A stretch of DNA of 64,000 bases, taken from positions 1 to 64,000 of the forward strand of contig MCFE01000146.1 in the NCBI GenBank assembly GCA_002104905.1. The letters run 5' to 3'. Each line of letters opens with the position of its first letter. Positions within the stretch are counted from its first letter, which is position 1. The notes beneath the pieces were generated by a model, which was not told the DNA's origin, searched no databases, and worked only from the letters and a program-made list of their open reading frames with translations. A program made the translations under genes and the position numbers. This stretch comes from Basidiobolus meristosporus CBS 931.73. Its lineage: Eukaryota; Fungi; Basidiobolomycota. Positions 1 through 49,699 of the stretch are shown here, one piece after another.

Positions 1-401
1 TTATCTAGAGATTCGTAGTTTGTTGCTTTTCTTTGTACCAGCCTACACTGAGCCGTAGACCAGGCTGAAATCATCATAGAAATTGAGAGCACTAGGTTCT
101 ATAGACATAATAGATACGAAACTTTGGTCTCGCCTCTCAATATCCGCTTACATCATATTCCCCAATCATAATAGGAGAGGGAGAGAATGAAAACTCAACA
201 TTTAACTAACTCGGCCCAGGCCATATTAATCAGCAAAAAACTGCGTACTCACCGACTCCACTCTTCCCACTCCCTTAACGAGCTTCGAAAAGGCACCGGC
301 CGCGTATTTTTTAGTAATACAGCTGGTCTACCATCAAACGATTACTTCACAACGCAAATTCGTCTCGAATTAATAGGTATTTCAACGATAACGCTCACTA
401 T

Positions 402-10243: not shown

Positions 10244-11578
10244 TTGATGATTTTTCTTTCCCGGATGGATTACAACATTCATGTTCACCAGATAGCGAAT
10301 ATGAGTCTACTAGCCATCTGGCTACTGTTCACATTCATATCCACGGCGATGTTTTTACGTAATCGAAACCACGAGATGATCAAGTATCGAAGCGCCATGC
10401 TAACCATCGGAAGTGTTGCCTCCCTTAATATCCTGATTTCATACTTGATCACCAAGATCACCCGGGCCAGATTCCTTTGCAACCTTGCGATTTGGTTTGT
10501 TTCCATAGGCGGGGTAATCACCATACTGTCGGTGCTCCTGAAGTATCTCAAGCTGGCCATCCTGTTCTACGCCAGTGAGGCGAAACTCCATGCGGTGCGG
10601 CAAAGCTATTCCCAAGGATCCAACACCAAGATGCACCAGTTCGAAATCAAAGATCCCGGCAACGAGCACTTGGAGCTTATATTCGATACGGACACGATAT
10701 GCAGGGAGGAGCGTGTTTTGAATCAGATCCAGCTATTTCGGTATCAAATTCGATTGCCTTCCAAGTGGATCACGTACGGACTGGGTGCAGCGATCACCAT
10801 GCAGGTGGCCATCACTCTTATCATGACACTAACACACAAAGAGATCCATGACATTGGCTCCTCCGAAGAGTGCTTCAACCATGTCACATTCCTTCCCTTG
10901 AAGATCATTTGCTCGATCTATGCAGCGGTCATTGGTTTTTTCTGCCTGTACATGCTTCATGGAGTTCACGACGCCTTTGGGATTCGCAAGGAGCTCGTAT
11001 ACATCATCATCACGATAGTGGTTCTGCTGGGGGCATTTGTTGTTTACAACTTCGTGGGGGTATTTAAGCCGTACCATTCTGTGTTTGCGTCCAGTTACTT
11101 GCTCATCCTAGGATTGATGATCATCCAGATCATCATGATTAACATCCCGTTGCTAAAGGTCTACCGGAACACGCGGAATCAATGGAACTTGGAGAAGGGC
11201 CAGATCGGCTTTAACGAGGTGGTGGAGGATCCGTTGTTGTTCGAGCAATTCAAAGACTTCACCGTCAAGGAATTTAGCATAGAGAACCCGTTGTTTTTCG
11301 AGCGGTGTCAGCGCATGAAAAAGCTCCCCACCGCCTTGATCAGAGACGAGGCCTTGGCAATCTACGATACTTTCATTGTCCCAGGGGCCGCTCTACAGGT
11401 CAACCTGTGCAATGCCGTCGTTAAGGAGATCACCTTCAAGATCGTCGACAACCAGATCGACGACACTGTATTTGATCCGGCCATACGCGAGGTGGCTGAG
11501 ATCATGATGCGGCACACCTTCCCTCGTTTCCTCCGCTCTTGTAAGGGCCAAAGCTTCAAGTTTGCTCAGCTGTTCTAA
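10244..11578 (+). CDS. 7TM-RGS protein (GPCR-like 7TM region fused to a C-terminal RGS domain; GprK/AtRGS1-type architecture)
   Basis: Seven hydrophobic segments, then RGS consensus FNEVVEDPLLFEQFKDFTVKEFSIENPLFF...IYDTFI...LQVNL...FDPAIREV...TFPRFL. True 5' end unresolved: the ORF start is a TTG and upstream exons are possible. Confidence 0.85.
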   Translation: MMIFLSRMDYNIHVHQIANMSLLAIWLLFTFISTAMFLRNRNHEMIKYRSAMLTIGSVASLNILISYLITKITRARFLCNLAIWFVSIGGVITILSVLLKYLKLAILFYASEAKLHAVRQSYSQGSNTKMHQFEIKDPGNEHLELIFDTDTICREERVLNQIQLFRYQIRLPSKWITYGLGAAITMQVAITLIMTLTHKEIHDIGSSEECFNHVTFLPLKIICSIYAAVIGFFCLYMLHGVHDAFGIRKELVYIIITIVVLLGAFVVYNFVGVFKPYHSVFASSYLLILGLMIIQIIMINIPLLKVYRNTRNQWNLEKGQIGFNEVVEDPLLFEQFKDFTVKEFSIENPLFFERCQRMKKLPTALIRDEALAIYDTFIVPGAALQVNLCNAVVKEITFKIVDNQIDDTVFDPAIREVAEIMMRHTFPRFLRSCKGQSFKFAQLF

Positions 11579-22025: not shown

Positions 22026-25000
22026 CTATTCCGAACAACGTAACCCCTCATTCAGGAGTTTCAACTTTGATACGGTCTGATAGTCAAGAATTGAGTCAGA
22101 AACACAATGAATAGCTGTGTTCTCAATACACAATGGGCGTAGGTTTTTGGCCGTGATTATTTGAACCAGCTCTCCGGTTTCAATGTCCCGGATCTCGAGG
22201 AACGCCTGATCAAAAGCAACCACATACGGGAATTGGAGAGCTAAAGACGAAGTTTTAGTGAAGATACACCTTCTCTCAACACAGCTGAAGAACAAACCAA
22301 AAGCAGAAGGTGTTCCCTCCCAGTTAATAATAAAATTGGTCCGAGCCCTTCGGCCATTCTTATTCACATAAAAGGCGAACTCTGTTTTATGGAAGAACTC
22401 AGTAGGCTATCCCTTTAGTGGATGATAAATAAACATACCGTCATAACATAGAAGGAAGTCACCATCCCGGATTCTGAAAATACTTATGGGTCTGACATTT
22501 TCCCTCTTCAAGACAAAGCCAAGGTTGTCATCGGAGGGATCCAACAAAGCTGTGGCAAATTCAACGTGATTAATACTCAATGCTAACTTTGTTGATGGTC
22601 TTTGCCAAACCTTGAGTGTTTAGTGACTCCAGGTCAACAATCTCAAATCCCTTGGTACACCCAACGCAAAGCTTAGATCGCAGGAAGTGAACCGATGTAG
22701 ATTCGGTCGGAATATAGAATTCCTATAGATAGAGACGAATGAGTAACCAGCGCAACGAAATATTTGGTGGGATCTATCGCTGACCTTGTATATTTTCATG
22801 CCGTCACCTCCACCTCTGATCAGCAGCCTGCCCAGAGAGCTTTTCTTCTTTATAGTGTCAACAGGGATTGGTTCATACGTCTTGATTGTTGAAGACAATG
22901 CGGTGGACTTGACTACACAGACTAACGTTCTTCCTAAGCACATTCCAACTTTGAAGAAGCTTACATGTGAGCTTATTTTTCGTGCTCTCTTGATAGTAAC
23001 GGGTTCTGATGACTCTAATAACGCTAAAGGAAAAGTAACAAGGACTTTGTCTAAATCGTTGCAGCTACTTAGAACTACTTCAAGGTAATAGGCAAATGTT
23101 GGGATTTACCGGCCAGGACAAGCAAAACGCTATAACTTTCTAGCACTGATATCTGGGAAACTCTCTCGATATCGACGACCTTTTTGAAACTCTTATGTGA
23201 CCCTTCAGTTCCAATATATACACCATCGTCCGTGCCAATAACGATTGTTTTGCTGAAATCTGTAATGGTACTCCGTTAGGCTATCTTTTGTGACATCGAA
23301 CGAGATTCCACTTACCAATAGTCGCCGAACAGGTGACCTTGTTTGTGGTGAACGATATATCCGTTAAGATTTCCATATCGAACCTTTTCTTCTTCTCCAC
23401 AATCAACGTCTGTTGTTCCTCGATTTTTTCCTTCCACATCTGTAAATCTGCTTGACTTGCCGCATAAAGTGTATGGCTACCACCATTTTTTCCAAGGTGT
23501 ACAATGGTGAGAGGGTGACCTCCCTTTCCCATGTCTGTAATGTATTTTGGCGCTGCAGCCCCGGGAAGGTGGGGTTTCCCCAGAAATACAGCACTAGAAC
23601 GTCTTGTAGTTGCTCTTGGAATAACATCGTCTCCAGACGATAGTGAGAGAAGCTCTAATGGTATTGGCTGAATCAGGATTTAGTTAAAGATATCGGATGG
23701 TGCTATTTCGGGCTGATAACTTACCTTTTTGTGAATCTTGTATTCATAAAAATCTGAGTCCTTGGTTTTCTTTTTCTTCGTCAATAGTAGCATATGGTCA
23801 AATAAGAACATGGTCAGCTCCACTTGCTCTACGCCTGAGCGCTTTTTAATGGGTCCATCTCTGATGAGCTGGCGATATTCGTCAAGTAGTCGCAGGCTCT
23901 TAACTTTATGTTAGATGTGGAGTTGAAGGAGGGGGCGAGGCGAAGTAAACATGATACCTTAACATCATTATTTTTGGAGAACAGAGCATCATTTAGCTTA
24001 TTCAAACGGAGTCTGTTGTCTGCTCGACCTGTCTCGATGTTAACCTGTGAGAGTAGCTCTTTGATAGATTTAATTACGACAGGTAAATCGCGTGTATCTG
24101 GGTGGCCTTCAGGGGTGTGTTTAATGACGGCTTCAAGAAGGAGGGGGTAACGCCCTAGTCGTGTGGTTGGACGTCCCAAGAAGCTGTGAATTGGAAGTTT
24201 CCTAGACTCTGGTAAGCGTTCCCTTTCCTAAAATGCATCGGGTTAGATCTTTTTTCCAGTGCGCAATGAAGGGTAAGGTTTACCTCCAAGAATTTGGCCA
24301 GCCTGAAGTTACGTTTGGCTTCCAACTCCAGACAATATTTAGAATAGACCTGATGAGCACCATAGCTAACAAAAGGTTTGAAGTTTCCAATATGCTTTAG
24401 GAAGACATCCCCTATTCGCTCAACAACCGCCTTTTCATTTTGTCTTTTGATAAGGTCGTCGCTCAGTTTGGATCCAACTGAATACACTTCCATGACATTG
24501 TAGAACACTTCCCGACCAAAGTTCTCTCTTCTCGTCTCTTCTATAACACTCCCATACATTAAAGGTGCAATATAGAGCTGCAAAACCCACCAGTTCAATA
24601 CCAATGTACGAGAAATATGCTACGATAACTCGTACCTCGTTTAGGATCTCAAGATCTCGGACAAAATCTCTTTCTGTGTAGATGATTTCAAAAATGATTT
24701 CCTGTCGTTTTTGCTCTTCTTTTGAAACCATGTCAACAATTTCTTTTGGAACCGAACCGATCCAAAGATTCTGATTTTCCTGGATATGTTTGTTAAGACA
24801 GCCATGGAGGCATTAAGAATAGTACGCAGTGCCTATACCTGTTTTTCATGGAGTGAAGAGCGGCTCTCCGCCCGTGATAAGCCGGCACTAGGTGTCATGT
24901 TCAATCTTGCTTGCTAAACTCGAAATTAATGGTCAGGAAACAAAGACTTGATCCGGTACTCAAATACCTGTTCAAGTCGTCTAGGACACGCAATGCTATA

Positions 25001-25924
25001 GCAAAGCTTATCGCGTGTACATGTTGGGGAGTAGCAATCTGCAAGCAAAGTAAATACACCATTTACGGTAGAGCCGGGCTCCATACTCTGCAAGGTAGTT
25101 GGGAGTTGATTTGGTAAGCTTTCGTCAAATGAGGGAACCAACAGCTCGTCAAACTTGTATAATTCATTAATGCTATCCCGCAATCTATGCTCATAAGTAA
25201 CATCATGAAACATCTTTTGCGCGTCCAAGGCACGCCCAAGAAGTAAGGCCAGATTTCTGTCTCTGGTTCTAACAATATAGCAGATTATATCCTAAAGAAT
25301 CGTGTTAGTAGACAAGCCCTCATCGGGTAAAAGATTCGTTACATACCACTGCCTCACGCCCTGTAAAGCAATCCTTGTATTCCAAAGAATCCTTCATGTG
25401 ATTCTGTAAAACAATCTTTTCACGGAAAATCTCAGCCACCCTTGAGAGCAACGCTGGATAAATCAGGATCTTCTTTTTAGGAATATTCATGGCGTCATCA
25501 GTACGAGACATTCTTGCGAACTCTCCGTCAGAATTGCTTCTGGCACGGTGACCCCGTATCAAAGGGTGCAGTGTGCCGTCTTTTGATATGATAGAATTCA
25601 AGGCTTAGACAAAGATTCACTTGGATACTCAGTATTATTCAAACCTTGACCAATAAATTCCGAGGAGGCTCTATTTTGTGACTTGTTCTCGAGTAAATGG
25701 CTTGTACTTGCTATGGAGTCCCTTGAGGGGGAAAGCCCATACTCACTGAAATCCTCATTTGGGCTAAAGGGGGGTAGAGAATTACAAGCGTCAATAGTTA
25801 TCTCCAGGGATTCTGGGGTATTTGGCAAGTCGAGTGTTGTTTGGGGGTCTCCCATGTGAAAAGCGGTCAGCAAAGGAATGCGTGAGCCCTCTGTGACCGG
25901 ATAAGGCAGTGATTCGCTGGTCAT
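22026..25924 (-). CDS. ROM2: Rho1 guanine nucleotide exchange factor, ROM1/ROM2/Rgf type (DEP-DH-PH-CNH), many short introns
   Basis: DEP (KDCFTGREAV|DIICYIVRTRDRNLALLLGRALDAQKMFHDVTY), DH (EQKRQEIIFEIIYTERDFVRDL; FLGRPTTRLGRYPLLL), PH (LFDHMLLLTK; HTLYAASQADLQMWKEKI), CNH (WEGTPSAF|ALQFPYVVAFDQAFLEIRD). The start at 25924 is tentative; an upstream exon from ATG 26863 is possible. Confidence 0.85.
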
Positions 25925-27100: not shown

Positions 27101-30100
27101 ATGCTCTTAGAAACAATTAAAATAGATGAGCCCATAATAGGCCCTTGTGAACAGGATACAAAATCTCTGACAGAAATCGATCCACCAGTGAACAAAGCAG
27201 TAAAATGTTTGGCCCAAACTCTTCAGGCTGTAAAGGAGCATGTTCAGGCGTGTTTGATCGATCAGCCAAATGGTAAGCTTCTGGAACGAATGATCTCGCA
27301 CCACTTCGACTAACCTGCTTTTAGCTGAGATTCAGAGTTTACAAACACAAATTCTTAAGGAACTAAATCAGCTCCTGTATTCTGCTACCTCTAACCCAGA
27401 GAGTACTCCCTTACTCAGTACTCTTTCTGAGCTGAAGGAGATCCTGACTACGGAGGTTGAGGAGGATTCTCTTCATTTCGTAGTAGAGTTTTACTGCTTA
27501 ATGGTCGCCTTCACCACTGTATGCCAGCTATTTTTCGATAGACTTTTGAATGAATTGGTTGGCGAGATCCAGGCTGCTTACTCAAAAAGTAAGCACCCAT
27601 CCCAAATGTCCAGCTTTCAGCAACTCTTTCACGATGCCGATAATTACACCCGTCCTGGGTCCTTCAACTCTTATCTGTGGCACTATCACTTTCTTACCAT
27701 CACTGCCAACCAGAACTTCGGCCGGCTCCTAGAAAGCCTAATCCAAAAAGAGAGGATCAGTTTCACCAATCTAGACTACGTCGAGACCATCTACTCCACA
27801 TTCTACATGAGCCACTTTCTAAATGCATCTGCGCAGCAGCACCAAAAAGATAGGGGGCAGTTTTTTACCCCGCGTTCCGTCGTCAAGTTCATGTGGGACA
27901 GGGTGCTACGCTCGGAAAAAGGGAGGGTGATGGATTTAGCGAGGATCATAGCCGAGAACCGTGGTGAATACCTGATACTCCCGCCTACTCTTGATCCATG
28001 TATGGGTATTGGTGGGTTTTTGTGTGAATACATCAACCGAATCACCAAGTTCGCCAGTACCAACCCTATCATTTGGAATCAAAGCCTCAAGGTTGAGGAA
28101 GTGATGTCTGCCTGCGTGGAGTCAATGTGGGGGATTGAGATCGACCTGTTCACCAGCACTATTGGCAAACTCAATATCATGATCCACCTGGTGCCCCTTT
28201 ATAAGCGTTGGCTGGAGTTGCAGGTGGTAGCCAAGACACAAAAGCGCTTCAGACTTCCTCGGTTGAAGCTTTTCTGTAATGATACCCTCAAGCTCTATCT
28301 GCCCAACGATGGATCGGACCCCTGGACCAAGTATCATCTGAGTACGCTCCGGGATCCAGGCGGCGTGCGATTCCACTACATCCTCACTAACCCACCCTAC
28401 ATGATCCGCAAGACCGGGATAGTCTCCGAGCCCGACCCGGTTCTCTACGACACTACTGTCCTGTGCGGAAAAGGAACCCAGGCCTATAGCTACTTCATTT
28501 GGATCGCGCTTCAGAAATTGTCCAAGGCTGGTATCCTTTGCCTCATCACAGGTATGGACCCCTTATTATCGAGAGTTGGGCAGAATGCTGACTGTTGCAA
28601 TGTTTAGCTAGCCAATGGATGACCCTGGAGTTTGCTGACAAACTAAGGTAGATTTATCTTTGCTGGCCAAACAACCACGGGCACTTCTGATTTTTGAGAA
28701 CATAGGGCGTGGATGTGGAAGAACTGCTGGTTGCACGAATTTTACCAGTTCGAACCTTACAAGGTCTGGAGAAAGGTTCAGACCGACTCACTTATATTCG
28801 TGGTTCGCCGTAAGTCCGAGGACATGACTGACCGAAATCAGAATGATCAGATCATTTTCCTGCGGTATATGGATCGTAAGGCCTCGCTGGAGGAAACCCT
28901 TCTAGCCTATGAGACCTTCATCGCTGGCCCCAATAGAAAAGGCAATGCGCTAATGGAGTCGAAGTTATCAACCCAGGAGCAGAAGCTCAATGGCCGTTCG
29001 TTTTCATTTTTGATGCCCAACTCCCCGACCAGCACCTCCATCCATGCCCTGGTTAAGGGCCTAGCCGGTATCTGTGATGCTTCTGGGAAGGCTGCCCAGT
29101 GGTCAGACGATTGCCCGTTGATATGGCATCGTGGGCCCAATACTAATCCGGTGTACGCATTGGTGGTGCGAACCGAGTGGGGTCGAATGAAGTTTGGCGA
29201 AGAGAATTGTCGGAAATGGTTAAGGCCCGTCTTTTATTGGAATGGCATGGCCAACGGGCAAAAGGAGGTGAAGGAATATCGCTTCTGGGAGAACAAGGAC
29301 CCTTATCGGCTGAGCAAGAAAGAGGGCTCGCCGGCCGAATCCTACATGCCGGTAGAACCTCGGACAGACTACTCGCTAATAATGGTGGATAAGGCTGGGT
29401 CGAACACATTGATTGCCAATCAGCGCTCGAATCCCACCCCATTTTACCTATATCTGAAGGAGGCCCGTGAAAAGTTGCAACCAACGTTCGAGGACCGAGA
29501 GATTGCCTATTGCGGCACTCAGAAATGCGGGTAAGTACTGGCTCGTAGCTGATGCCCAGATTTCATGCGGTGCTGACCCTTGGTGTAGTGTAGACGTACC
29601 GACCAAAATCATCACTCCCATCAACTACGGCTACTTCTCCAAGAACCAGGTATGTGCGGATTCCCAGATTACTATCGGCAAACAGTCACTTATCAACGGG
29701 CCCATAGCCACGACAACGATTCTTCATCGACAAGAGCTCCGTGTGTGTCACGAATCAGGTATGCGACCGTACGAGGAATCGTTTTCCGGATCCAGACTGA
29801 CAGTGGTCCTTGGTTTATCGCCACAGTGCATTTATTTCACTGTAAAGCCTCACTTGGACATAGGCTATTCCTACTTTCTAGGGTTGTTGAACTCCTCTGT
29901 AATCCAATTTCTGATGGCGGAGCACTGTAAATACGATCAGCAAGGCCGGATGCGCTTGTTCAGAGAAAACATGGCCAAGCTACCCTACAAACCACCATCC
30001 AGTGAGCTCGTCGGATGGGTCGCGAAACTGGTGGGCAACATATCTGCGCTGAAGAGACTGATCTTCCAAGTACTGCATGTTCTATCGATCGCTCCGGATT

Positions 30101-30840
30101 CCTGGCTTGAGTATATGCGCCAAGGAAAATACCGGCTCAAACCCAGCGAATGCGAGGTGTTGCAAGCCAGGTTGTCGCAGTTTCATCTGAACTCCGGGGC
30201 CGTTGGAGAGGAGCATGGTTTACAGGAGAGGGTGGTTCGCCTGTTGGAGAGCTCGCTGTTCATGCTGAGTGCTCTACAATATGGACTGGATCAGGTTTTC
30301 TACTTGATATACGATGTCCGGATCGAGCTGCAAGTCGAGTTGGAGAATGAGCTCCGACTCGACGTCAACTCTTCGATCGTTGAAGAATATCCACGCCACG
30401 ACCGCCATCATTCTAAAATCGACACGTCCAGCAGAGAGTCCGATAGTCCTGTAGATACCACCCCACAGCCCACCGATGCACCTGTTTCTCTTGGCTTGGC
30501 TGAGAACAATGAGGTTCTGAAACTCCCTGTACTGTATTTTCCATCCATCAACCCACAAATTACTCTCCCGCCTTTTCGTGAACTCTTCCATATGCACATC
30601 AACCCCGACGCCTCGAGTTTGCAGTCCCTCGGCACGCATTCTGTCTCAAGCGCAACCTCGCTCGCCGAACAGCCGGTGGTCGAGCACAGGGCCGAACCTC
30701 ATGTAGATAATAGCGATATGGAGATAGAGATCGCCTTTCCGCCTTGGCTGGTTGAGCTTGTGGACAAATCAACCAGTACGTTGCGATCGGTTCAGGAGTT
30801 CCATGAATTTCTAACCAATTCCACTGGCACACCAGTCTAA
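27101..30840 (+). CDS. Intron-containing, bacterial R-M-type N6-adenine DNA methyltransferase (Eco57I/TaqI-like, NPPY class) with target-recognition region; about 1129 aa, 7 exons
   Basis: Exons 27101-27272, 27325-28551, 28608-28647, 28706-29530, 29589-29649, 29708-29758, 29827-30840 (3390 nt, one open frame; all six introns GT-AG, 52-68 nt). Motifs KDRGQFFTP, LDPCMGIGGFL (SAM binding), WGIEID, NDTL, LTNPPY (catalytic), YSYFIWIALQKL...LCLITASQWM...KLR, TaqI_C-like RFFIDKS...YFLGLLNSSVIQF...KLP, and C-terminal LDQVFYLIYDV. Confidence 0.85.
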
Positions 30841-31172
30841 TTGAATCCCTAATTGAATCCCAGTCTAGACATACATATAGAGTAGGGTATAATCAATCCG
30901 TACATAATTCCTCGTTACTTGTTCGATTTAATGTGATTTTTACTAGTAAATTTTCCGGTTTTGTGATTCAACTCCCCGTAGAGCTAGTTGGGCTGGGCAT
31001 CGTGTTCGTTGGAGATTGATCCAATAAAGGCTTAGAACTTATAAGTAACTGGCTCGGATACCATGCAAATAAATAGAAGTTTATTGAACTCCACGGCGTG
31101 GGAAATCGCTAAGCAAATCAGAATCGGGCATAAAAGAATCAACATGAAGACATAGTAAAAGAAAAGCTATAT

Positions 31173-37553: not shown

Positions 37554-38240
37554 CTTCCCCCTGCATGGACATGGCTTGTTCGGGATGGCATCTCTTGCGC
37601 CACCTCAGTCATATGTACTTACTCCAACATAATATGTAAATAATCGAGATGTGCCCAGGTGGGTGGAGGCGACCCTCGACCCCTACGCCTGGGCCAGAAC
37701 TGTTGTTGATTAAATAAAGAAATGGTTGGCCCTTTGATCTATTTATGAGCGCGAGTCAGGCTAATGCATGAGCCAACCGACTTATGCCTTAGTCCAGGGT
37801 GCACTGAGGATCGACATATTCGTTTGGCGCGCTACTGGAATGGTGCTTTAGTCGATCGTGTATATGACAAATGGCCCACGAGCCTAGTCACTCGGATTTT
37901 GAGCTGCCACTTTCCTGGTGAAATGAAAACCCTAATATGCGGTCTCGGAGTGATTTGCCCATTGCCCCAGATATGCAGCTATAACCTGGAGTATGGGTAG
38001 GTGGGGCTCCAAGTTACAACCCAGAAGCCCCTGCCAGTTCAATTTGGTGAATGACATGTGTTGTGGACGTAGTATGTACTCACTAATTGGAAAATTGCAT
38101 ACTAAGCCCCATACCAAATTTCTTCCAACTTGGCAAATATGTAATGCTATTGAACTAGATTCTGCAAAATCATATACGTATCTTACTCTCCTCTGCCTCT
38201 TTATGCATAGTTGCTCTCTACTTTTTGATGATGTAGGCTT

Positions 38241-41200
38241 TGTTGTAAGAGTTTTGGAGATATTGAATATGATTGGGAAATAAGTAGGTTATGTGGTTTT
38301 CACTTGATGATTTATTGGACAAAAAAGTAGTATATATACTTTATATGATCTTGGCAAGACAAGCAAGTAGGATATATTTAGCAAGGTCCCAAGAGCATGC
38401 GTGCAAAGTTTGGGGGTGTTTGGACAACTTATCAAAACTTCATGTTATGGGTGCTGATAGGCTGGTGAAAATATTCCAAATAAATCCCAACAAGAAATTT
38501 GATCAGAATTTTCTAGGATTTTTATGTAATGGTCTAAGTGACTAAGCTGGGTAAATATTAGGTTCAACTACAAAATCCCACAATTCTCTTGCTCAACTAA
38601 ATACTCATATCAACTATTCCTAGTTGTGGTCTAAGATACTCAAATTTGTCTCTAGCTAATTGTTTGGTAAATATGTCAGCAATCATTTCAGCTATACAAT
38701 GGTAAGTTAGTAAGTTATCTGAGTTTACCCATCAGACTGGTCCACATACATGTCCTGATCAAGTTCTCCATTCAAAAATGCAGTTTTTACATCTATTTGA
38801 TGAATAAAATACTTATATTTGGCTGCAATAGCCTATATTAATCTAATGGAATTAAACTTGGCTACCGGTGCAAAGGTCTCAGTATGGTTAAGTCCTTTGG
38901 CTTGAGAGTATCCTTTGGCCACAAGTCTTGCTTTGTATCTTTCAATTGAACCTTCAACCTTGTATTTTGTCTTGAAGACCCATCTGCATCCAATTGATTT
39001 TTGGTTGATTGGCAATTTGACTAAGTCCCAAGTTTGATTTTCCATCAGGGTCTGATATTCCTCCATCATTGCAGATCTCCAAAACTTTGTCTGTGGGCTA
39101 TTTAGGGCCTCTTTTACAGTCTGGGGCTCATCAATACAGACTGAATAGGCATAGGCTAAGTTTGTACCCTCATTGATATATCAATTTGGGCCATTTCTTG
39201 ACTGATTGCATCTCCTGGCATTTGATACTGGAATGATCACTTCTGGGATATTCCTGGGCACTGATTCTGGCTGAACCACATTTGTAGAGTCCTCTGGAGT
39301 GAAAAAATCTTCATTGTTTTGCTCTGATTTGATCCTGACAATTGGTGGACTTGAAATCCCTTTTTGTCACCATCTGATGTCATTTTTTGTGAAACTTCTG
39401 AATTTTCATCAAACCACACATCCCAGGACTTGATTAGCTTCTTTGCTTTGGTATTGTAGAGTCTGTATGCTCTACTCTCATTGCAATAGCCCAAAAATAT
39501 GCATTTTACACTTTTTGGCTCAAATTTTGAATGATTTCTGGGCAGTTGCTTGGCATATGCTGTACACCCAAACATTCTTAGATGTTCTGCACTTGGTCTG
39601 TATCCATAACATGCTTCTGATGGAGTAGAATCATAAAGTATTCTATTGTTACTCCTACTTTTTGTTGTAAGAGTCTCGGAGATATTGGTAGTGATTGGGA
39701 GAACAAGTAGATTATGTGGTTTTTACTTAATGATTTATTGAATGTAAAAGTAGTATTTATATTTTTACCTGGTCTTGGCATTAAAAGCATGTAGAATACG
39801 TTAAGAAAGGTCCCAAGAACATGTGTGCAAAGTTTGGGGCTGTTTGGACAACTTATCAAATTTTCATGTTCTGGGTACCTGGTATTTTGGTGAAAATATT
39901 CTAAGTAAATCCCAACAAGGAATTTGGTCAGTATTCTCTAGGATTTGAGGGTAATGATCTAAGTGACTAAGTTAGGTGAATATTTAGGTGGAATTACAAA
40001 TTTTTACAACATTTTTAAGGTATACAACAGTGACAACTCATTCTGCCCATATATCATAGGATAATTTTTGATCATGAATCATAGATCTTGTCATATCAAT
40101 TATTGATCTGTTAGCATGTTCAGCTACTCCATTTAGCTGTGGGGAGTATGGTACAGTAGTCTCTTACTTTATCTCATGAACTTTGCAGAACTGGATGAAG
40201 TGTTTGGAGGTATATTCTCCACTATTATCAGAGCATATTTTCTTGATTTTTCCACCAGTTTCTCTCTCCACTGTGGCATTAGACTCCCTGAGCTTAGACA
40301 GGGCTTCTTCCTTTCTCTCCATGAAGTAGACTCATATGTATCTTGTATAAGAATCAATAAAAGTGATTAAATACTTGATCCTACCTAAGGATGAATTTTG
40401 CATAGGTCCACACAGATCTGAGTGAATTAGATCTAGTTTTTCTTATTTTTGATTAACCCAGAGCTCTTGAGCAGTTGTCTGGCTTGTGTCCCATATATGC
40501 ATGTTTCACAGTGCTCCAAATTAGCTGGGGATTAATTTTTACTCTGGAAATTAGCTGAACTTTGATCATTTTGCACATATAATCAAACTTGATGTGCCCA
40601 AATATCCTGTGCCAAAGCATTGGTGTTTCTTCATTTAAGTTACTTATATTGGCTTCCAAATATGATGGAGTATAAGTCAGCCTGTATAGGTTCTGATCTC
40701 TGATACCCAAAGCAATATGGGCACCATTTTTATCAGTGATCTTGCTTCCAGCATTGTCAATGCTGAAACTGAGTCCTTCTGCAGTGGCCTTTCTTACAGA
40801 TAGTAGGTTCTTGGCTATTTCTGGTACATAGAATACCTCTTTAAAGGTCAGTGTATGGCTACCCTCACTGCTTCTTAGGTTTACTTGGATAGTTCCTTCT
40901 CCCACTGCATCAAATGTTCTATGGTCACCCATGAAAGACTTCTTGATTGGTATTTCTTGATATTGGGTAAAAGTTCTTTTTGTTGTGTAAAGTGTCAAGA
41001 TGCTCCAGAGTCAATATACCACATCTGAGAATCCTTGTTTGTGGTCATGTTTAGTGCAGATATGAATAGTCTATCTTCAGTTGTTGGAGCGTTTCCATAT
41101 TCAGGCTTTTTCTGCTGCCTATCTTTCTTTTGAAGCACTGGTCTGATGTGTGTCCTTTCCTTTTGCAGTGGTTGCAAAACAGGATGCTGTTGTCTTTGTA

Positions 41201-42229
41201 GGGTCTTGGGTACCTCCTTTGTTGGTTATCATTGCTTATTAAAGCATTCTCTTCTTCCTTCTTATTGGTGCTTGATTTTCTTAGTTCTTCCTCCAGGAGC
41301 CTTCCATATACATAATATAAGGTTAAATCTTCAGTTCTGGACTCTAGGACTGATACAAGGCTCTGAAACATGTCTGTCAGGCTATTCAGCATGGTGACTA
41401 GCACATCCTCATCAGTAGCTGGTATACCCACAGATTTGATTTCATCTACCAGCAGGGTAATTCTGTTAATTAGATTTTTCATTTCTTCTCCTGGCAGCAT
41501 CTTTGTAGTAAAGATTTTTGTCTTGGTTACATTTTCCTAGCAGCTGAACATGACTGGTAGATGTCTTCTAATGCCTTCCAGGCATTCTTTGCCGTGTTTG
41601 CTCTTAAGCATCAAATTAGCAATTTGTCCTTAACATTAAGGCAAAGGCAGTTAAAGACACTTTGTTCTTTCTTATGGTACTTTAAGGCCTCTGCTCCCAC
41701 ATTTCTAGGAGGGCATTCTTCTCCCATGACAACATCCCAAAGGCCTCTTTCTTGTAGCAGCATCTTCATCTTCACCTTCCATACTTGGTAGTTAGATCCA
41801 TCCAACTTTTCAGTGGAGGGAAAAATTCCAGTAATAGCAGTTGTAGACATTGCAAAGCATGACAGCTTGAGGCTCATAACCTGTTGTAAGAGTCTTGGAG
41901 GTATTGGAAGTAATTGGGAGGACAAGTGGATTATCTGGTTTTCACTTAATGATTTATTTAATGTAAAAGTAGTATTTATAATTTTACCTGGTCTTGGCAT
42001 ACCAAACACATAAAGTAGGTGAAGCAAGACCCCAGGAGCATGTGTGTAAAGCTCAGGGCTGTTTGGACAGCTTTGAGAATTTTGATATTCTGGGTACCTG
42101 ATAATTTGGTGATAATATTCTAAGTAAATCCCAACAAGGAATTTGGTCAGTATTCTCTAGGAATTGAAGGTAATGCTCTAAGTGACTAAGTTAGGTGAAT
42201 ATTTAGGTGGAATTACAATTTTTACAACA
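38241..42229 (-). mobile_element. Ty1/copia element A (decayed; internal RT-RNaseH deletion; contains a solo LTR)
   Basis: LTRs 38241-38582 and 41882-42229 (TGT...ACA). Remnants of gag (EKLDGSNYQVWKVKM; CNHCKRKGHTSDQC), protease (WYIDSGAS), integrase (FGCTAY...KCIFLGY) and RT start (WVFKTK...YKARLVAKGYSQ). PBS GGTTATGAGCC. Confidence 0.9.
39663..40011. mobile_element. Solo LTR of the same copia family inside the integrase of element A
   Basis: TGTTGTAA...TTACAACA ends; similar to the other copia LTRs; flanks CTTTT/TTTTT. The equivalent empty site is visible in element B at about 44241-44260. Confidence 0.85.
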
Positions 42230-45200
42230 CTACCACTCAGCTAAATGTTCATACTGACTAGTCCTAATTTTGACATATGATATTCAATCTTGTGTCTAGC
42301 TAATTGCTTGGTAAATATGTCTGCAATCATTTCATCTGAAGGACAGTAAACTAAGCTAACTAAGTTATTGTCTATAGCTTCATGTATGATATGATGTCTA
42401 ATATCTATGTGCTTAGTTCTAGCATGAAAAGTTGGATTTCTACCTAATTGTATACATCCTTGATTATCTTGAAATAAATTAATAGGCGTTTTTTGACATA
42501 GGACTAAATCTGTATAAAGCTTTCTTAACCACATTACTTCTTTTGTAGCTTCACAGGCTGCCCTGCCTCTGTGGTGGAAAGTACTACAGTTGGTTGCTTT
42601 CTTGAATTCCATGAAATTGCTCCTTTACAGTAAAGAACGGTGTATCCTGTGGTGTATCTTCTGTCCTTTAAATATTGTCCCCAATCAGCATCAGAATATC
42701 CCACAAGATCCTGTTCTGAGTCAGTATAAGTGTATCTCAAGCAGATATCAGCAGTTCCTTTTAGGTATTTAAAAATCCACTTAACTGCTGCAATATGATC
42801 AGATCCATAGTTCTGATTATGCTGGCTGACAACTCCCACTGAATATGAGATATCTGAAAGTGCCTCAAGCATGATATATATCAGATTGTCAACCATAGAT
42901 TAATAAGGACTGTCAGGGCTTTCAGATGGCTCCAAGCTCTCTTGACCTAGTTGAGATTTGACCAAGGTAAGGTTTGTCACCATTGGTGTAGCTACCAGTT
43001 TACAGTCTTCCATTTGGTACTGCTTTAGTATATCTTGAGTATACTTGGATTGGCTTACAGTGATAGTCTGGGTATTTCTGTCTATGGAGAACTTTATCCC
43101 TAAGTAGTAACTGAGTTCTCCTAGATTGGTTATCTTGAACTCTTTATATAGGCTAGATTTAGTCTCTTCCAATGTTTTTAGTATATTGATGGCTATAATA
43201 AGATCATCCACATATAGAGCTAATAGAACTTGGTTTGCAATATCTGACTTATAGTATGTACCATAGTCAGCATTACTCCTTTTGATACTCAAGGATTTCA
43301 AATAAGAATATATCTTGCAATTCCAGGCTCTTGGTGATTGTTTGAGACCATATAGATATTTTAAGCTTGCAGACCAGATGGGGGTTATCTTGGTCAGCAA
43401 ACCCATCAGGCTGGTCCATATACATGTCCTCATCAAGCTCTCCATTCAAATATGCAGTTTTAACATCCATTTGATGTATAAAAAACTTGTATTTGGCAGC
43501 AATAGCCAATATCAATCTGATGGAATCAAACTTGGCCACCAGTGCAAAGCTCTCAGTATAGTCAAGTCATTGTGTTTGAGAGTATCCTTTGGCCACAAGT
43601 CTTGCTTTGTATTTTTTAATTTAACCATCAGCCTTGTATTTTGTCTCAAAGACCCATCTGCATCCAATTGCAGATCTCCAAAACTTTGTCTGAGGGCTAA
43701 TCAGGGCCTCTTTTACAGTGTGGGGCTCATCAATATGGACTGAATAGGCATAGGCTAAGTTTATACCCTCATTGATACAGTAATTTGCGCTATTTCTTGT
43801 CCAGCTGGATCTCCTGGTATTTGATACTTGAGTGATCACTTCTGGGATATTCCTGGGCACTGATTCAGGCTGAATCACATTTGCAGAGTCCTCTGGAGTG
43901 AAAAGGTTCTCATTGTTTTGCTCTAAATCAATCTTGACTATTGGTGGACATGAGATCAAATTTTTGTCATTATCTAATGTCATTTTTTGCGACAATTTTG
44001 AATTTTCACCATACAACACATCCATGGACTTAATCAGCTTCTTTGCTTTGGTATTGTAGAGTCTGTATGCCTTACTCTTGTTGCAGTAGCCCAAAAATAT
44101 GCACTTTACACTTTTTGGCTTAAATTTTGACTGATTTCCTTGGCATATACTTTACACCCAAACATTCTTAGATGTTCTGCACTTGGTCTGTAATCATACC
44201 ATGCTTCAAATGGAGTAGAATCACAAAGTATTCTGTTATAACTCCTATTTTTAAGGTATACAGCAGTGGTAACTGACTCTGCCCAAAATAATATGATATT
44301 TTTTGATCATAGATCATTCAGCTTGTCATATCAGTTATTGATCTATTTGCATGTTCCACTTGTCCATTTTGCCATGGGGAGTATGGTACAGTAGTCTCTT
44401 GCTTTATCCCATGAATTTTCCAGAAGTGGATGAAGAGTTCTGCGGTATATTCTCCACCAATGTCTGAGAATATTTTCATTATATTTTCACCAGTTTTCTC
44501 TCCACAATGGCTCTAAACTCCCTGAGCTTAGACAGAGCTTCATCCTTTTTCTCCATGAAGTAGACCCACATGAATCTTATATAACCATCTGTTATGAATA
44601 GACACAAGGCAGGAGGAAAAGCTAGGCACGGCAGGAAAGGACTTAGGTGTGGACCATCAAGGCAAGGCTGTTTATTCAAGACCTGTGTTTATCAGACTGA
44701 GGAATACTTAAGGGGGGATAGGACTATATATACTTTTTGGTTATACTGATGCCAAGAGATATTGGCAAATACTAATGGGGTTGTGGGGTGAGGCACAGTA
44801 ATGGTGCTGGGGATAATGACATAGATGACACAGCACTGAGACAGGATGGGGAAGTGGATTGGGTCACCTGATCATGTGACTAAGTCATGTGACCTGGTAA
44901 TTCCATATACGGTACTGGACTATGAAAAATACAATGGGAAGCTTCCATGGAATGTTCCATTGTGTAACAATGGTTTGGAATGGTCAGGAACTTTTGGGAA
45001 GGTGGTAGAAGGTTCCAGAAGGAATCTCTTAGAAATTGAGCTTGGAAGCTGAAACTTGGCATGGGTGTTTGTGGTTGTCATGTGATCATGACACCATCAA
45101 TAAGTGTGATTCAATACTTCATCTTGCCTAATGATAAATCTTGTGTAGGTCCACATAGATCTAAGTGAATTAGATCTAAATTTTTCTTAGTTTTGATTAG

Positions 45201-46927
45201 CCCTAAGCTTGTGAACAGTTGTCTGGCTTGTTTCTCATATTTGCAGGCTTTACAGTGCTCCAAACTAGCTGGGGGATCAATTTTTACTCCAGAAATTGGC
45301 TGATCTTTGATCATTTTGCGCAAATAATCAAAATCAATGTGTTGAAATCTTCTGTGTGAAAGCATTAGTGTTCTTCATTTAAGTTACTTATTTGGCTTCC
45401 AGATATACTGGAAGATAAGTCACCTTATATAGATTCCAATCTCTGATACCCAAAGCAATATTGGGACCATTTTGATCAGTGATCCTGTATCCAGAATTGT
45501 CAAAACTGGGACTGAGTCCTTCTGCAGTGGCCTTGCTTACAGATAGTAGGTTCCTGGCTATTTCTGGTACATAGAGTACTTATTCAAAGGTCAGTGTATG
45601 GCTTCCTTCACTGCTTCTAAGGTATACTTGAATAGTTCCTTCTCCCACTGCATCAAGTGTTCAACTGACACCCGTGAAAACCTTCTTGATTGGAATTTCT
45701 TCATATTGGGTAGAAAGTTCTTTTTGGTGTGTAAAGTGTTGGGATTCTCCAGAGTCAATGTAGCACATCTGAGAATCCTTGTTTGTGGTTGTATTTAGTA
45801 CAGATATGTATAGTCTGTTGCTGCAGTGTTTATATATTCAGGCTTTTCTTGCTAATTATCTCACTCTTTGCAACACTAGTCTGATGTGCATCCTTTCCTT
45901 TTGCAATAGTAGCAAAGCAGATTGCTGTTGCCTTTGTAGTGTCTTGGGTCCTCATTAGTTGGTTAACATTGCTTATTAAAGCATTTTCTTCTTCCTTCTT
46001 ATAGGTGCTTGAATTTCTTAATTCTTCATCCATATACATAATTTAAGGTCAAGTATTCAGTTCTAGACTCTAGGGCTGATACAGGCTCTGAAACTTGTCT
46101 GTCAGGCTATTCAGGATAGTAACTATCACATCCTCATTAGTAGTTAGTATGCCCACAGATTCCATCTCATCCACCAGCAGGGTAGTTCTGTAAATTAGAT
46201 TTTTCATTTCTTCTCCTGGCTGCAGCGTGTGTTTCAGAATTTTTGTCTTGGATACATTTTCTTAGCAGCTGAATATGACTGGCAGGTGTCTTCAAATGCC
46301 TTCCAGGTATTCTTTGCCATTTTTGTCTTTGACATTTAGGCATATGCAGCTGAAGGCACTTTGTTTATTCTTCTGGTACTTTAAGGATTCCCCTCCTATG
46401 TTTTTAGGAGGGCATTCTTCTCCCATAACAGAATCGCAAAGGCCTCTCTCTTGTAGCAGCATCTTCATCTTCAACTTTAACATGTGGTAGTTAGATCCAT
46501 CCAACTTTTCAGCAGAGGGGAAAAATCCAGTAAGTGCAGTGGTAGACATTGCAGAGAGTGACAACTTGGGGCTCATAACCTGTTGTAAGTGTCTTGGAGA
46601 TATTGGAAGTGTTTGGGAGAACAAGTAGATTATGTGGTGTTCACTTAGTGATTTATTGAATGCCAAAGTAGTAGTTACACTTTATATAGTCTTGACACTA
46701 CAAGCATGTGGAGTAGGTTAAAGAAGGTCCCAAGAACATGTGTGCAAAGCTTAGGGCTGTTTGAACAACTTTGAGTATTTTCATGTACTGGGTACATGGT
46801 AATTTGGTGAAAATATTCCAAGTAAATTCCAACAAGGATTTTGGTCAGTATTGTCTAGGACTTGAAGGTGATGATTCAAGTGACTAAGCTAGATGAATAT
46901 CTAGGTGGAGTTACAAGCTTTACGGCA
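41882..46927 (-). mobile_element. Ty1/copia element B (near full-length, frameshifted); its 3' LTR is the 5' LTR of element A
   Basis: LTRs 41882-42229 and 46581-46927. Remnants of gag, protease, integrase (LDLIHLDLCGP), RT (HQMDVKTAYLNGEL; LKYLYGLKQSPRAW; LALYVDDL) and RNaseH (GYSDADWG; ARTKHIDIRHH; ADIFTKQL). PBS GGTTATGAGCCCC. Confidence 0.9.
44590..45093 (-). mobile_element. Solo LTR (504 bp) of a different family inserted in the integrase of copia B
   Basis: TGTTATGA...TCATGACA ends with perfect 5-bp TSD CCATC. On the minus strand it starts TGTCATGATCACATG, like the chromovirus LTR at 50668. Confidence 0.85.
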
Positions 46928-49115
46928 TTTTGGATAACTTTGAGAAAGATCATACCCCAAGCATCTGAAAATTTGGTGAAAATATTCAAAGTAGATCCTC
47001 AGAAGAGAATTGGTCTGAATATAATGCTAATCAAACAGCAAGATCAATGTTGCTAAGTTAGCATGAATGTTTAGGTGACAACTTAATAGCTACAACACCA
47101 CCACTCAACAAACTATTCATAAGAAATAAATACACATTGAGAGTGTGCAATCTGTAATAAGCATATAAGACTTAATTGTGTTGCATATGGAACTAATATA
47201 TTATCCAGCAGTATACATATTTGTGCTCAGCTTAATTGAGCTAGTAACTTGTAATTCAATGTGCATATCTATTTTGTAGTATGCCTAAGAAATCTCATTG
47301 ATCTGATTGTAATACTAATCATCAACTTTAATTGGTTTTACAGGCTTAAGTAATGCGCTGTGTCTAATTGTCAGATTGTAATAATAATATATAGCCTCTG
47401 GGCTATCCAGTGCTTCTTATTTGAGCAAAATGTCCCACATTTGGTCAAGTTAAGGCTTTTTCATTTACAGTAGATTGGGAGTTTCCTTATTTCCAGGTAA
47501 AAGTCTAATTCATTTAGACAACTTCACTGTGTGTCCATATTAGCCTCAGGGTCAGTTACTTCCATCATATAGACACTAAATGAGGTAAGAGAAATGATTA
47601 ATATTGGGCCAAGTTAAGGTTTTGCATTTTATGCCTGATCCAGATTGTCCTCATTTCCTGGCACTGTGGCACATATCACAGGACCAAAGAAAAAGGTTTT
47701 TGCTCAACTCTGAGTTGGGATGGCCTACTCCCACTTGAAACATGCCTGTTTAGTGACTCAGATCCACAAAAAGAATCTAGATTGATCATCTTTGTATTCC
47801 TTAAGTAGCAATAACTTTCTCTGGACTTATTACTTCATTTACAGTAGATTCAAAGTATGTCCATTTGCCTCATGAATCACCCAGTTTGGTATCAAAAGTA
47901 CCGTAGATTGTTTGGTGGATATTTTCAGAGTGCTTCTACCAATTTGGACTTATACAGCTGCTTTTGTCTTATCAGAATATACTTGTGGGTACAAATATAT
48001 ATACTTGGCACCCACGTATATCAATTGTAGCTTTTGATACAGTAGACCATACTTGATCAAATAAACTGCATTTGAAAGTTAGTTTCATCTGTACTGGGTA
48101 TCAAACTCCAAAATATTAGCTTTTTGAGCAACAGAGCTTGGCATTCTTGCAATTGATTGTGTGGCACATAGTACTCCAGGTGGATATATATGTATTTTAT
48201 ATCTATAAGATCCTGGACAATTGGGGGAGCTTGCTTCTAAGATATTTGTTCTCTGATAAGTGGTCCAAAATGGCGGTTAACAGCTCCAGTATTTGCATTC
48301 TCAGCCTTATCTTGAGAAGCAACAAATTTGATATAATCTTCCTCCAGTGATCTTTAAATAATGATCTGTTTTTTTCTTGCAATTCAGGAAAATATTCCAC
48401 CCAAAAGCTTGTCCAACAGTCAATTGAGGTTGCATGGATATGTATAGCAGTACATTTCATTGCAGATCTGGACCCTCAATTGTTGGAATTATGCAATTTT
48501 CTTCAGTAGTGGTGGAGCACCAACATACTATATTTCTTGACATATTTACATGGCTGCTTGATATACTCTCCCTCATAACTAGCTTTAGTAGCTACCAAAG
48601 GGGTCTTTTGGAGGCATATCCATCTTCTCCGCAGCAATATCATCATGAGCAAAGTCCTTTTAACAGCAGTAGTCATCTTTAGCTTCAGCAGTGCAATGGT
48701 GCCAAGAATCTTTCTCCAGACTAGCAGAAGTACATTCAAGGCAAGGTAGACACCAAAAAGAGAGCAAGCTTGGGACTAATAACCTGTTGCACTATTCTAA
48801 GGAGTATTGGAAGAGGATTTACGTGTTATTCACTTGTAGATTTATAGATCAGAAGTATGGTATTTATACCTTTGATATATTAGGGCAAACAGGCATGTAG
48901 AGTTTGTTAAGTAAGGTCCCAAGAATATGTGTGCAAAGTTTGGGGGCTTTTGGGCAACTTTGAGAAGGATCATAATCTGGTACCTGATAATTTGGTGAGA
49001 ATATTCTAAGTAAATCCTAACAAAAAATTGGTCAGGACAGAATGCCAATAAAAGAGTAAGATCTATGTGACTTAGCTAGCATGAATATTTAGATGACAAC
49101 TTAAGATTTACCACA
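46928..49115 (-). mobile_element. Non-autonomous copia-family derivative: 5' LTR 48785-49115, truncated 3' LTR 46928-47097, about 1.7 kb internal region lacking gag-pol motifs
   Basis: LTR similarity to the other copia LTRs; PBS variant GGTTATTAGTCCCAAG; TTGAGTGGTGG tract before the 3' LTR like CTGAGTGGTAG of element B. Confidence 0.65.
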
Positions 49116-49699
49116 TTTTTTAGCCTCACAGGCTGCTATTTATTCCACCTCTGTGGTGGAAAGTTATACAAATGGAGGCTAACTTGAGTTTGGTGAAATT
49201 GCTTCTTCACAGTAAAGGAAGGTGACTCCAGCAGCAGATATTCTGACCTCTAGATCTTGTCCCCAATCAGCAATCAATTATCCCAAAAGATCGTGATCTG
49301 AGCCCTGAAGCACAAGTATCACTGGTTCCTTTTAGATATCTAGAAATCTGCTTAACTGCTACAACAAAATTAGCTCTGTAGTTCTGATTAGGTCAACTGG
49401 CAACTACCACTGAAAACATGATATCTTGAGAAGCTCCTAGCATACTATATATGAAGTAACCTACCTTAGACTAGGAAGTGATGTCTAAGCTCTCATATGG
49501 CACCAGGCTTTCTTAATCTGGTTAAGTCTTAACCAAGTTATGATTTGTCTCCATTGAAGTGGCTGTAGTATTATAGTCTTCCATCTAGTACTTCTTAAGT
49601 ATACTGTGAGCATGTTTGGACTGGCTTAGGGTGATAGTGTGGGTACTTCTGTCCAGGGAGAACATTATCCTTAATTTGTTACTGAGCTCTCCTAGACCC
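49116..49699 (-). mobile_element. Copia RT/RNaseH fragment
   Basis: Similar to 42540-43130 (...LGELS..., YMKTTRLP, DWGQDL, STTEV). Truncated on both sides by other insertions. Confidence 0.7.

Follow-up and report, generated by a model that had tools for sequence, protein, structure and literature searches.

Introduction

In a 64,000-nucleotide stretch of the fungus Basidiobolus meristosporus CBS 931.73 (contig MCFE01000146.1, positions 1 to 64,000; hereafter the window), one gene carries the motifs of a bacterial restriction-modification (R-M) type DNA methyltransferase. Does this gene belong to the fungal chromosome, what does it encode, and has the system to which it belongs already been described? 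A sequence-only reading of the window had proposed an undescribed system, in which an anciently acquired methylase was kept under selection as a second, sequence-specific 6mA writer, possibly for defence. We conclude, with a probability of roughly 0.85, that the gene is orthologous to fungal MetB, a gamma-class N6-adenine DNA methyltransferase that consists of one chain and descends, with loss of the endonuclease, from a bacterial type IIG/IIL (Eco57I/MmeI-like) R-M enzyme.

Fungal MetB has been known since 2024, when Lax et al. (Nat Commun 15:6066, PMC11258239) described the family as the writer of one-strand 6mA in early fungi. Deletion of metB in Mucor reduced 6mA by 70-75%, chiefly in the asymmetric fraction, and the AAA6mACA motif disappeared. 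The same study proposed an ancient bacterial transfer of MetB, the origin at which the sequence-only reading had also arrived, and reported a total 6mA level of 1.6% for B. meristosporus. Its Supplementary Data 4 lists the B. meristosporus protein ORX96779.1 among the homologues (1 copy in this species), and the family is tabulated in a 2026 review (PMC13297926); the suggestion of an undescribed system was therefore mistaken. In an earlier survey, Iyer, Zhang and Aravind (2016; PMC4738411) describe M.EcoKI/M.TaqI-type methylases with a fused MTase-S domain in basal fungi, and their group-2 clades 5/6 may include the MetB family.

Results

The gene is intact, spliced and transcribed

Joining the seven exons of the gene (Table 1) yielded 3390 nt that encode 1129 amino acids, with a single stop at the end of the spliced open reading frame and GT..AG borders in all six introns, as the sequence-only reading had predicted. 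The public model, ORX96779.1 (family sequence P0037), is a 389-aa fragment without the catalytic motifs; it is 100% identical to residues 417-792 of the 1129-aa protein, and its ending is an erroneous read-through into intron 6. This model should give way to the seven-exon one.

Table 1. Coordinates of the methylase gene, its parts and its upstream neighbour in the window.
Feature	Position	Strand	Description and evidence
RhoGEF/DEP/PH/CNH gene	22140..25924	-	upstream divergent neighbour, outside methylase gene; tblastx
Exon 1	27101..27272	+	start codon, residues 1-57; ORF and splice model
Intron 1	27273..27324	+	52 nt, GT..AG, ACTAAC branch site
Exon 2	27325..28551	+	N-terminal helical domain and methylase motifs X, I, IV
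Methylase motif X	27855-27872	+	within exon 2
Methylase motif I	27993-28019	+	within exon 2
Methylase motif IV NPPY	28389-28400	+	within exon 2
Intron 2	28552..28607	+	56 nt, GT..AG; absent from X3 contig
Exon 3, micro-exon	28608..28647	+	40 nt; splice model, X3 contig
Intron 3	28648..28705	+	58 nt; absent from X3 contig
Exon 4	28706..29530	+	end of methylase domain and first part of target-recognition domain (TRD); border near 29033/29034
Intron 4	29531..29588	+	58 nt; absent from X3 contig
Exon 5	29589..29649	+	61 nt; splice model, B. ranarum, X3 contig
Intron 5	29650..29707	+	58 nt; absent from X3 contig
Exon 6	29708..29758	+	51 nt; PRQRFF.D...CVTNQ, near-invariant in family
Intron 6	29759..29826	+	68 nt; absent from X3 contig
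Exon 7	29827..30840	+	TRD end, C-terminal helical domain, disordered tail, terminal helix, stop codon
LNSS motif (TRD end, exon 7)	29887-29898	+	
C-terminal helical domain (exon 7)	30001-30405	+	structure model
Terminal helix (exon 7)	30736-30816	+	structure model

A 3262-nt contig from the public run X3 aligned to 27344-30903 with zero mismatches and precisely lacked introns 2-6, as expected of a spliced transcript. Transcript support begins where this contig starts, downstream of exon 1, of intron 1 and of residues 1-81. The start of the gene was instead compared with that of the orthologue in Basidiobolus ranarum, K7432_011060, with which exon 1 is co-linear. Intron 1 is supported because B. 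ranarum has an intron (54 nt) at the same position and in the same phase, and because exon 1 retains 66% amino-acid identity between the species, with one in-frame indel. The gene is thus intact and transcribed in B. meristosporus, and the full-length corrected gene model and the evidence for its spliced transcript are new here. A search of RNA-labelled public runs for the gene listed none, and run X3 surfaced when the run kind was set to 'any'; it is labelled 'DNA?', yet its contig is spliced.

The gene is shared with B. ranarum and is under purifying selection

Along its whole length the B. ranarum orthologue is 75% identical to the B. meristosporus protein, with the same seven exons and intron positions, including the 40-nt micro-exon at the same size. 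The neighbouring RhoGEF gene is co-linear with B. ranarum L001:3-3820, which adjoins the methylase gene of that species, and tblastx thereby revealed synteny of the two loci. The neighbours that we checked were ordinary eukaryotic genes or had no Pfam match, and the GC content of the gene was similar to that of its flanks.

These observations bear on whether the gene might be bacterial contamination or a very recent, still undomesticated insertion, as its bacterial-type domains could suggest. The introns and the eukaryotic neighbour recur in a second species, the transcript contig lacks five of the six spliceosomal introns, base composition follows the flanks, and the named relatives with E-values below 1e-20 are fungal. 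Contamination was refuted by the B. ranarum introns, the RhoGEF synteny and the spliced contig, and we assign the whole idea a negligible probability. That this is a genuine chromosomal gene of the fungus, as had been claimed, was thereby borne out.

Comparison of the two Basidiobolus genes gave pN 0.134 and pS 0.84; these values are reported in place of dN/dS because synonymous sites are saturated. Judged by these coding-sequence differences, the gene is under purifying selection, in line with the earlier claim that it has been retained by selection. A pseudogene reading was considered and rejected.

The protein has the motifs of a gamma-class N6-adenine methylase

We located every motif named in the sequence-only reading, starting at residues 235 (GQFFTP), 281 (DPCMGIGGF), 327 (GIEID), 413 (NPPY), 813 (LNSS) and 946 (LDQVFY). 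Their arrangement preserves the gamma-class order, with motifs X, I and IV (NPPY) followed by the TRD and then by a C-terminal helical domain. Pfam matched exon 2 to N6_Mtase (PF02384; 8.9e-13) and to Eco57I (8.4e-9), and exon 7 to TaqI_C at 0.0036, which lies under the gathering score and constitutes a weak sequence signal for the TRD. Pfam returned zero matches in exon 1 or in exon 4, the TRD core, and found no nuclease domain in the protein. The only NCBIfam matches (MADS2, Alw26I) were far below threshold and were left unused. Several family members have a precomputed PF12950 match.

We also rejected an assignment to the MT-A70 family, as PF05063 gave no match at E-values up to 1, and as the MT-A70 (MTA1/AMT1) writers have a DPPW motif whereas this protein has NPPY in unpermuted gamma-class order.

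The predicted fold matches DNA methylases solved with DNA

The AlphaFold model of the protein (pLDDT 78, pTM 0.76) predicts a gamma-class N6-adenine methylase followed by a TRD, with one helical domain on the N-terminal side and another on the C-terminal side, and residues 26-235 of the model are entirely helical. Its closest solved relative is CamA (PDB 7lni, 7lt5, 7rfk, 8cxz), an orphan N6-adenine DNA methylase from Clostridioides difficile, which came top by profile (E 1.3e-14) and matched the model with Z 27.9 over residues 205-958, a span that takes up nearly the full CamA chain. Like the Basidiobolus protein, CamA consists of methylase and TRD without a nuclease; it differs in being bacterial, in sharing only ~18% identity, and in having neither the C-terminal tail nor a counterpart of the N-terminal helices at model residues 26-205. 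MmeI (5hr4), DrdV (7lo5), BpuSI (3s1s) and PglX/BrxX (8c45, 9ewz) share the same helical-methylase-TRD-helical order, and the type IIL/IIG enzymes and BREX PglX/BrxX aligned over about 930-950 model residues at 11-13% identity. These alignments, in which exon 4 fell upon the TRDs of CamA, MmeI and M.TaqI, extend to about model residue 960-975. Together with the Pfam matches, they upheld the interpretation of the protein as an R-M-derived methylase whose TRD is TaqI/MmeI-like and whose tail is helical.

A protein of this fold could nevertheless bind DNA without catalysis, or it could methylate RNA or the N4 position of cytosine in DNA instead; Iyer et al. (PMC4738411) report that RNA became the substrate of several N6A-methylase clades in eukaryotes. 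We consider this very improbable here. NPPY, not SPPY, is invariant among 40 family members, and conservation of the residues in motifs X and I reaches 90% or more. Every one of the best matches is a DNA methylase whose structure was solved with DNA, and the matched region takes in the DNA-reading TRD. Furthermore, the Mucor metB knock-out lowers DNA 6mA as measured by HPLC/MS and by PacBio, and 5mC does not change significantly (PMC11258239).

The structural alignments also bear on defence, which the sequence-only reading had entertained. Under this proposal the methylase would mark self DNA for an unlinked nuclease, in an R-M-like system against transposons, viruses or endosymbionts. It draws on the R-M ancestry of the protein, on its nearest non-fungal relatives, which carry Eco57I and TaqI_C (one of them also has a nuclease domain, HSDR_N), and on the full-length likeness to BREX PglX/BrxX (BrxX chain 1-929). 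However, the Basidiobolus protein lacks the N-terminal PD-(D/E)xK endonuclease typical of type IIG/IIL enzymes (Eco57I, MmeI, DrdV): its N-terminal helical region aligned to the post-nuclease parts of MmeI and DrdV, the matches to these enzymes spanning only chain residues 159-891 and 150-1029, respectively. BREX partner genes are absent beside the gene, and none of the checked neighbours departs from the description given above. In Mucor, metB mutants show normal growth and sporulation, whereas their sensitivity to hydroxyurea, their lipid content and their virulence are altered (PMC11258239).

Fungal MetB proteins form one clade with a strongly conserved TRD

Only 105 matches to the protein were found among 1.84 billion representatives, and the resulting family of ~40 clusters has named members that are nearly all early-diverging fungi. 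In a quick LG+G4 tree, built from a fast alignment of HMM-trimmed sequences, the fungal family formed one clade (SH-aLRT 100) separate from the prokaryote-type Eco57I/TaqI_C relatives. The B. meristosporus protein was sister to that of B. ranarum, and the next sister of this pair was Conidiobolus KXN73575.1, a named MetB homologue (SH-aLRT 83). The taxa of this tree did not include the Mucor MetB sequence, and the link to it is made through the tree together with accessions common to our family matches and the list of Lax et al.

The Basidiobolus protein thus combines an N6_Mtase domain, in which the SAM-binding and NPPY motifs are intact, with an MmeI/TaqI-like TRD, a place in the fungal clade and an entry in the published homologue list. 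Fungal MetB clade 1 (Mucor lusitanicus; PMC11258239) likewise has a PF02384 methylase, an MmeI/TaqI-like TRD, a bacterial origin and introns, and its branching tracks fungal taxonomy. The Basidiobolus proteins differ in a tail of ~140 aa that is their own; it contains a linear motif, which is conserved, and ends in a helix, with tail motifs shared with B. ranarum.

Mean identity within the fungal family was 51.5% in the TRD versus 46.3% in the methylase domain, and exon 4 was strongly conserved across the family. By sequence identity, no other domain of fungal MetB is as conserved across four fungal lineages as the TRD, and we report this observation here for the first time; the TRD exceeded the catalytic domain in a comparison that took in Basidiobolus, Conidiobolus, Glomeromycotina, Mucoromycotina and Mortierellomycotina. 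An arms race would predict diversifying TRDs. Because the TRD is conserved rather than diversifying, and because the protein has no nuclease, the defence role is disfavoured, and we regard it as improbable. Gongronella has diverged tandem paralogues of MetB.

Discussion

How, then, would Basidiobolus MetB act? By comparison with CamA, MmeI, DrdV and the Mucor metB knock-out, it probably uses its TRD to bind a short DNA sequence that is not palindromic, and the target adenine would be flipped into the NPPY pocket. Methylation would then occur on one strand only, producing asymmetric 6mA that would have to be rewritten after every replication, and that would stand beside the symmetric ApT 6mA of the MT-A70 complex. 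The sequence-only reading's proposal that the enzyme is sequence-specific and writes 6mA in addition to MT-A70 agrees with the Mucor MetB results, and may hold for Basidiobolus as well. TRD conservation suggests a single, fixed recognition sequence, and as this domain is the most conserved over four fungal lineages, the sequence recognised in Basidiobolus is probably similar to the AAA6mACA of Mucor.

More tentatively, and at somewhat less than even odds, we propose that a single recognition sequence has been held fixed since the ancient transfer, and that MetB marks a functionally important DNA word, not self versus non-self. If this were true, the Gongronella paralogues would be natural specificity variants of MetB. 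The tail found only in Basidiobolus, which carries the conserved linear motif and the terminal helix, could serve to anchor MetB to a partner.

The value of this locus as a discovery is limited, as the B. meristosporus gene already appears in the homologue list of Lax et al. The 1129-aa model shows that Basidiobolus retains a complete, expressed MetB. This makes a stronger case for MetB in the Zoopagomycota/Basidiobolomycota lineages, where the text of Lax et al. stressed loss; outside Mucoromycota, the only holders that their main text names are Conidiobolus and Paraphysoderma (PMC11258239). The conservation of the TRD also leads to a testable prediction, namely that the recognition motif would be common to early-diverging fungi.

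Expression and correction of the gene model

The sequence-only reading had described 27101-30840 as a domesticated restriction-modification (R-M) type N6-adenine DNA methyltransferase gene, with six canonical short introns, an uninterrupted reading frame of about 1129 aa and a full set of motifs. Joining the seven exons listed in the table yielded a 3390-nt coding sequence for 1129 aa with one stop, at its end, and the six introns (52-68 nt) were all bounded by GT..AG, most having CTAAC/CTGAC-like branch sites. All six quoted motifs were located in the protein in the order described (GQFFTP 235, DPCMGIGGF 281, GIEID 327, NPPY 413, LNSS 813, LDQVFY 946), and the domain profile check proposed with them returned N6_Mtase and Eco57I, with TaqI_C below threshold.

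We evaluated expression with contigs from public sequencing runs. A 3262-nt contig from run X3 aligned to window 27344-30903 with zero mismatches and extended 63 nt beyond the stop codon; introns 2-6 (56, 58, 58, 58 and 68 nt, GT..AG) were precisely absent from it, demonstrating that a spliced transcript exists, while runs X1 and X2 held the unspliced genomic form. The predicted junctions were thereby confirmed for introns 2-6; the first 81 codons and intron 1 lie outside the contig. The public model ORX96779.1 (database match P0037; K493DRAFT_216871, Basidiobolus meristosporus CBS 931.73) is a 389-aa fragment, 100% identical to residues 417-792 of our model, that begins at M417, directly after NPPY, and ends by read-through into intron 6. 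The fragment thus contains neither the motifs for SAM binding and catalysis nor the remainder of the target-recognition domain (TRD) and the C-terminus. The X3 contig contradicted this model at both ends and backed the longer one from at least 27344 through the stop codon, so that the truncated public model is corrected here.

The Basidiobolus ranarum orthologue K7432_011060 (P0125, 1143 aa) was 75% identical to the window protein from first to last residue, and its gene had the same seven exons, including those of 40, 61 and 51 nt, with identical intron places and phases. Between the two species pN was 0.134 and pS 0.84 (saturated), introns aligned at only 38-61%, and exon 1 retained 66% protein identity with one in-frame indel, a pattern of strong purifying selection; that the gene is kept under selection had been proposed. 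The divergent upstream RhoGEF/DEP/PH/CNH gene was co-linear with the gene adjoining the B. ranarum orthologue, and the remaining window genes were ordinary eukaryotic ones (cyclin, 7TM-RGS protein, LYC1-like GNAT, EF-hand and LRR proteins, copia-type retroelement pieces). Bacterial contamination, which would explain a prokaryotic-type methylase on this contig, was excluded by the spliced transcript, the orthologue with the same introns, selection, synteny and these neighbours; the gene does reside in a fungal chromosome.

Positions of features in the window, of domains in the AlphaFold model and of structural matches
Feature	Position	Strand	Remark
Exon 1	27101-27272	+	splice model
Exon 2	27325-28551	+	splice model; N6_Mtase (8.9e-13), Eco57I (8.4e-9), both above Pfam gathering scores
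Exon 3	28608-28647	+	splice model
Exon 4	28706-29530	+	splice model
Exon 5	29589-29649	+	splice model
Exon 6	29708-29758	+	splice model
Exon 7	29827-30840	+	splice model; TaqI_C (0.0036), sub-threshold in Pfam
Tail	30406-30837 (residues 986-1129)		B. ranarum sequence L001, 8160-9209
RhoGEF/DEP/PH/CNH gene	22140-25924	-	upstream
ORF, 7tm_3 (class C GPCR) segment with RGS domain	10244-11575	+	
ORF, uninterrupted, 1039 aa	12920-16036	-	no Pfam matches
AT-rich block	38000-50000		GC about 0.37
Pol_BBD and gag-pre-integrase	40456-40998	-	Ty1/copia-type piece
RVT_2	42903-43445	-	Ty1/copia-type piece
Separate retrotransposon gag ORF	58557-59168	+	
Helical domain	model 27-205		AlphaFold
Methylase domain	model about 205-590		AlphaFold
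TRD, mixed alpha/beta	model about 590-850		AlphaFold
Second helical domain	model 853-995		AlphaFold
Disordered stretch	model 999-1105		AlphaFold
Terminal helix, confident	model 1114-1137		AlphaFold
CamA (C. difficile orphan methylase)	model 205-958; chain 3-577		Z 27.9
DrdV	model 25-956; chain 150-1029		Z 25.4
LlaBIII, LlaGI			Z about 25
BrxX/PglX	model 27-977; chain 1-929		Z 24.9
M.BseCI			Z 24.5
MmeI	model 26-970; chain 159-891		Z 21.7
M.TaqI			Z 19.4

Elsewhere in the window, the AT-rich block contained the Ty1/copia-type pieces, and one reading frame combined a receptor segment with an RGS domain.

Predicted structure

The B. ranarum orthologue was modelled with AlphaFold from a 40-member family alignment (mean pLDDT 78, pTM 0.76), and the model was compared with solved structures using Foldseek and VIA-align. 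The type IIL enzymes DrdV and MmeI aligned only past their N-terminal nuclease domains, which makes the fungal protein an Eco57I/MmeI-type enzyme that has no endonuclease. A profile search of PDB sequences agreed with the structural matches (CamA 1.3e-14, BseCI 1.7e-10, BsaXI 2.4e-7, DrdV 4e-7). Only the Basidiobolus proteins had the tail, in which about 100 disordered residues with the conserved linear motif KLPVLYFPS.NP.ITLPPFRELFHMHI precede a confidently predicted terminal helix.

Membership of the MetB family

The claim that this system was undescribed was wrong, because the family, and the membership of this gene in it, had already been published, although its biological reading was essentially right overall. 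In Mucor lusitanicus, the PF02384 protein was given the name MetB by Lax et al. (2024; Nat Commun 15:6066, PMC11258239), whose deletion of it lowered 6mA by 70-75%, chiefly in the asymmetric fraction, and abolished the AAA6mACA motif, with no significant change in 5mC. They likened its TRD to that of MmeI, and found a well-supported fungal clade whose branching order follows taxonomy, inferring an ancient bacterial transfer followed by losses; holders named outside Mucoromycota were Conidiobolus KXN73575.1 and Paraphysoderma KAI9143530. Their Supplementary Data 4 gives B. meristosporus GCA_002104905.1 one copy, and six homologues in it (ORX96779.1, OAD69548.1, KAI8988547.1, CAG8493446.1, KAI9027396.1 and ORY94032.1) were all matched in our searches. 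The window gene is thus a member of the MetB family, which a 2026 review tabulates as the asymmetric 6mA writer (PMC13297926) and which may be included among the M.EcoKI/M.TaqI-type methylases fused to MTase-S domains that Iyer et al. (2016) reported in basal fungi (PMC4738411).

With an E-value limit of 1e-3, an exhaustive HMMER search of 1.84 billion cluster representatives returned only 105 proteins. Matches at 1e-30 or below numbered 33; these showed 34-49% identity and were mostly 900-1760 aa long. The named members were almost all from early-diverging fungi: Calcarisporiella, Phycomyces, Umbelopsis, Cunninghamella, Mycotypha, Rhizopus, Parasitella, Syncephalastrum, Gongronella, Jimgerdemannia, Conidiobolus, Paraphysoderma and Basidiobolus, with many Glomeromycotina and Mortierellomycotina. 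Across the 40-member alignment NPPY was invariant and the residues of motifs X (GQFYTP) and I (DPCxGxGxF) were at least 90% conserved. The closest non-fungal relatives carried N6_Mtase and Eco57I. TaqI_C was also present in the majority of those about 1200 aa long, and one had an HSDR_N nuclease match.

In a quick-search tree that placed 39 fungal proteins alongside 26 distant relatives (863 columns, LG+G4), Mucor MetB not being among them, the fungal proteins formed a single clade (SH-aLRT 100), with Mortierellomycotina, Glomeromycotina and Mucoromycotina groups inside it. The window protein paired with that of B. ranarum (100), then with Conidiobolus KXN73575.1 (83), a topology consistent with vertical descent within published clade 1. 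P0049, a 1142-aa Eco57I-type methylase from the transcriptome of the malawimonad Gefionella okellyi (EukProt), grouped with the distant prokaryote-type relatives; it may come from a contaminating bacterium or have been acquired separately by a eukaryote.

Target recognition

The TRD is the variable part of bacterial R-M enzymes. In the fungal family, by contrast, it was the most conserved domain, with mean identity to the Basidiobolus protein of 51.5% (methylase domain 46.3%, helical domains 21-24%) and 27% of its columns at least 90% conserved, which argues that it would read one fixed target and argues against a role in arms-race defence. The exception was the Gongronella butleri paralogues, with TRD identities of 34-42%. 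Four of these MetB-like genes, with consecutive accessions, sit on one contig (KAI8071771-KAI8071774, among matches P0017, P0021, P0015, P0020 and P0019) and a fifth lies elsewhere (KAI8068341). The five group in a single lineage-specific clade, on long branches, and their TRDs are the most diverged of the family, so they may be specificity variants.

The window protein is expressed and under selection, and combines intact catalytic motifs with a DNA-methylase fold and TRD and no nuclease. By analogy with CamA and MmeI, the TRD probably recognises a non-palindromic word, the target adenine probably being flipped into the NPPY pocket and one strand methylated, probably to give asymmetric 6mA. 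Such a mark would need rewriting after replication, and the enzyme would act in parallel with the MT-A70 complex, the writer of symmetric ApT 6mA. What is new here for the MetB family is the corrected gene model, the transcript evidence of expression and a predicted conserved recognition motif.
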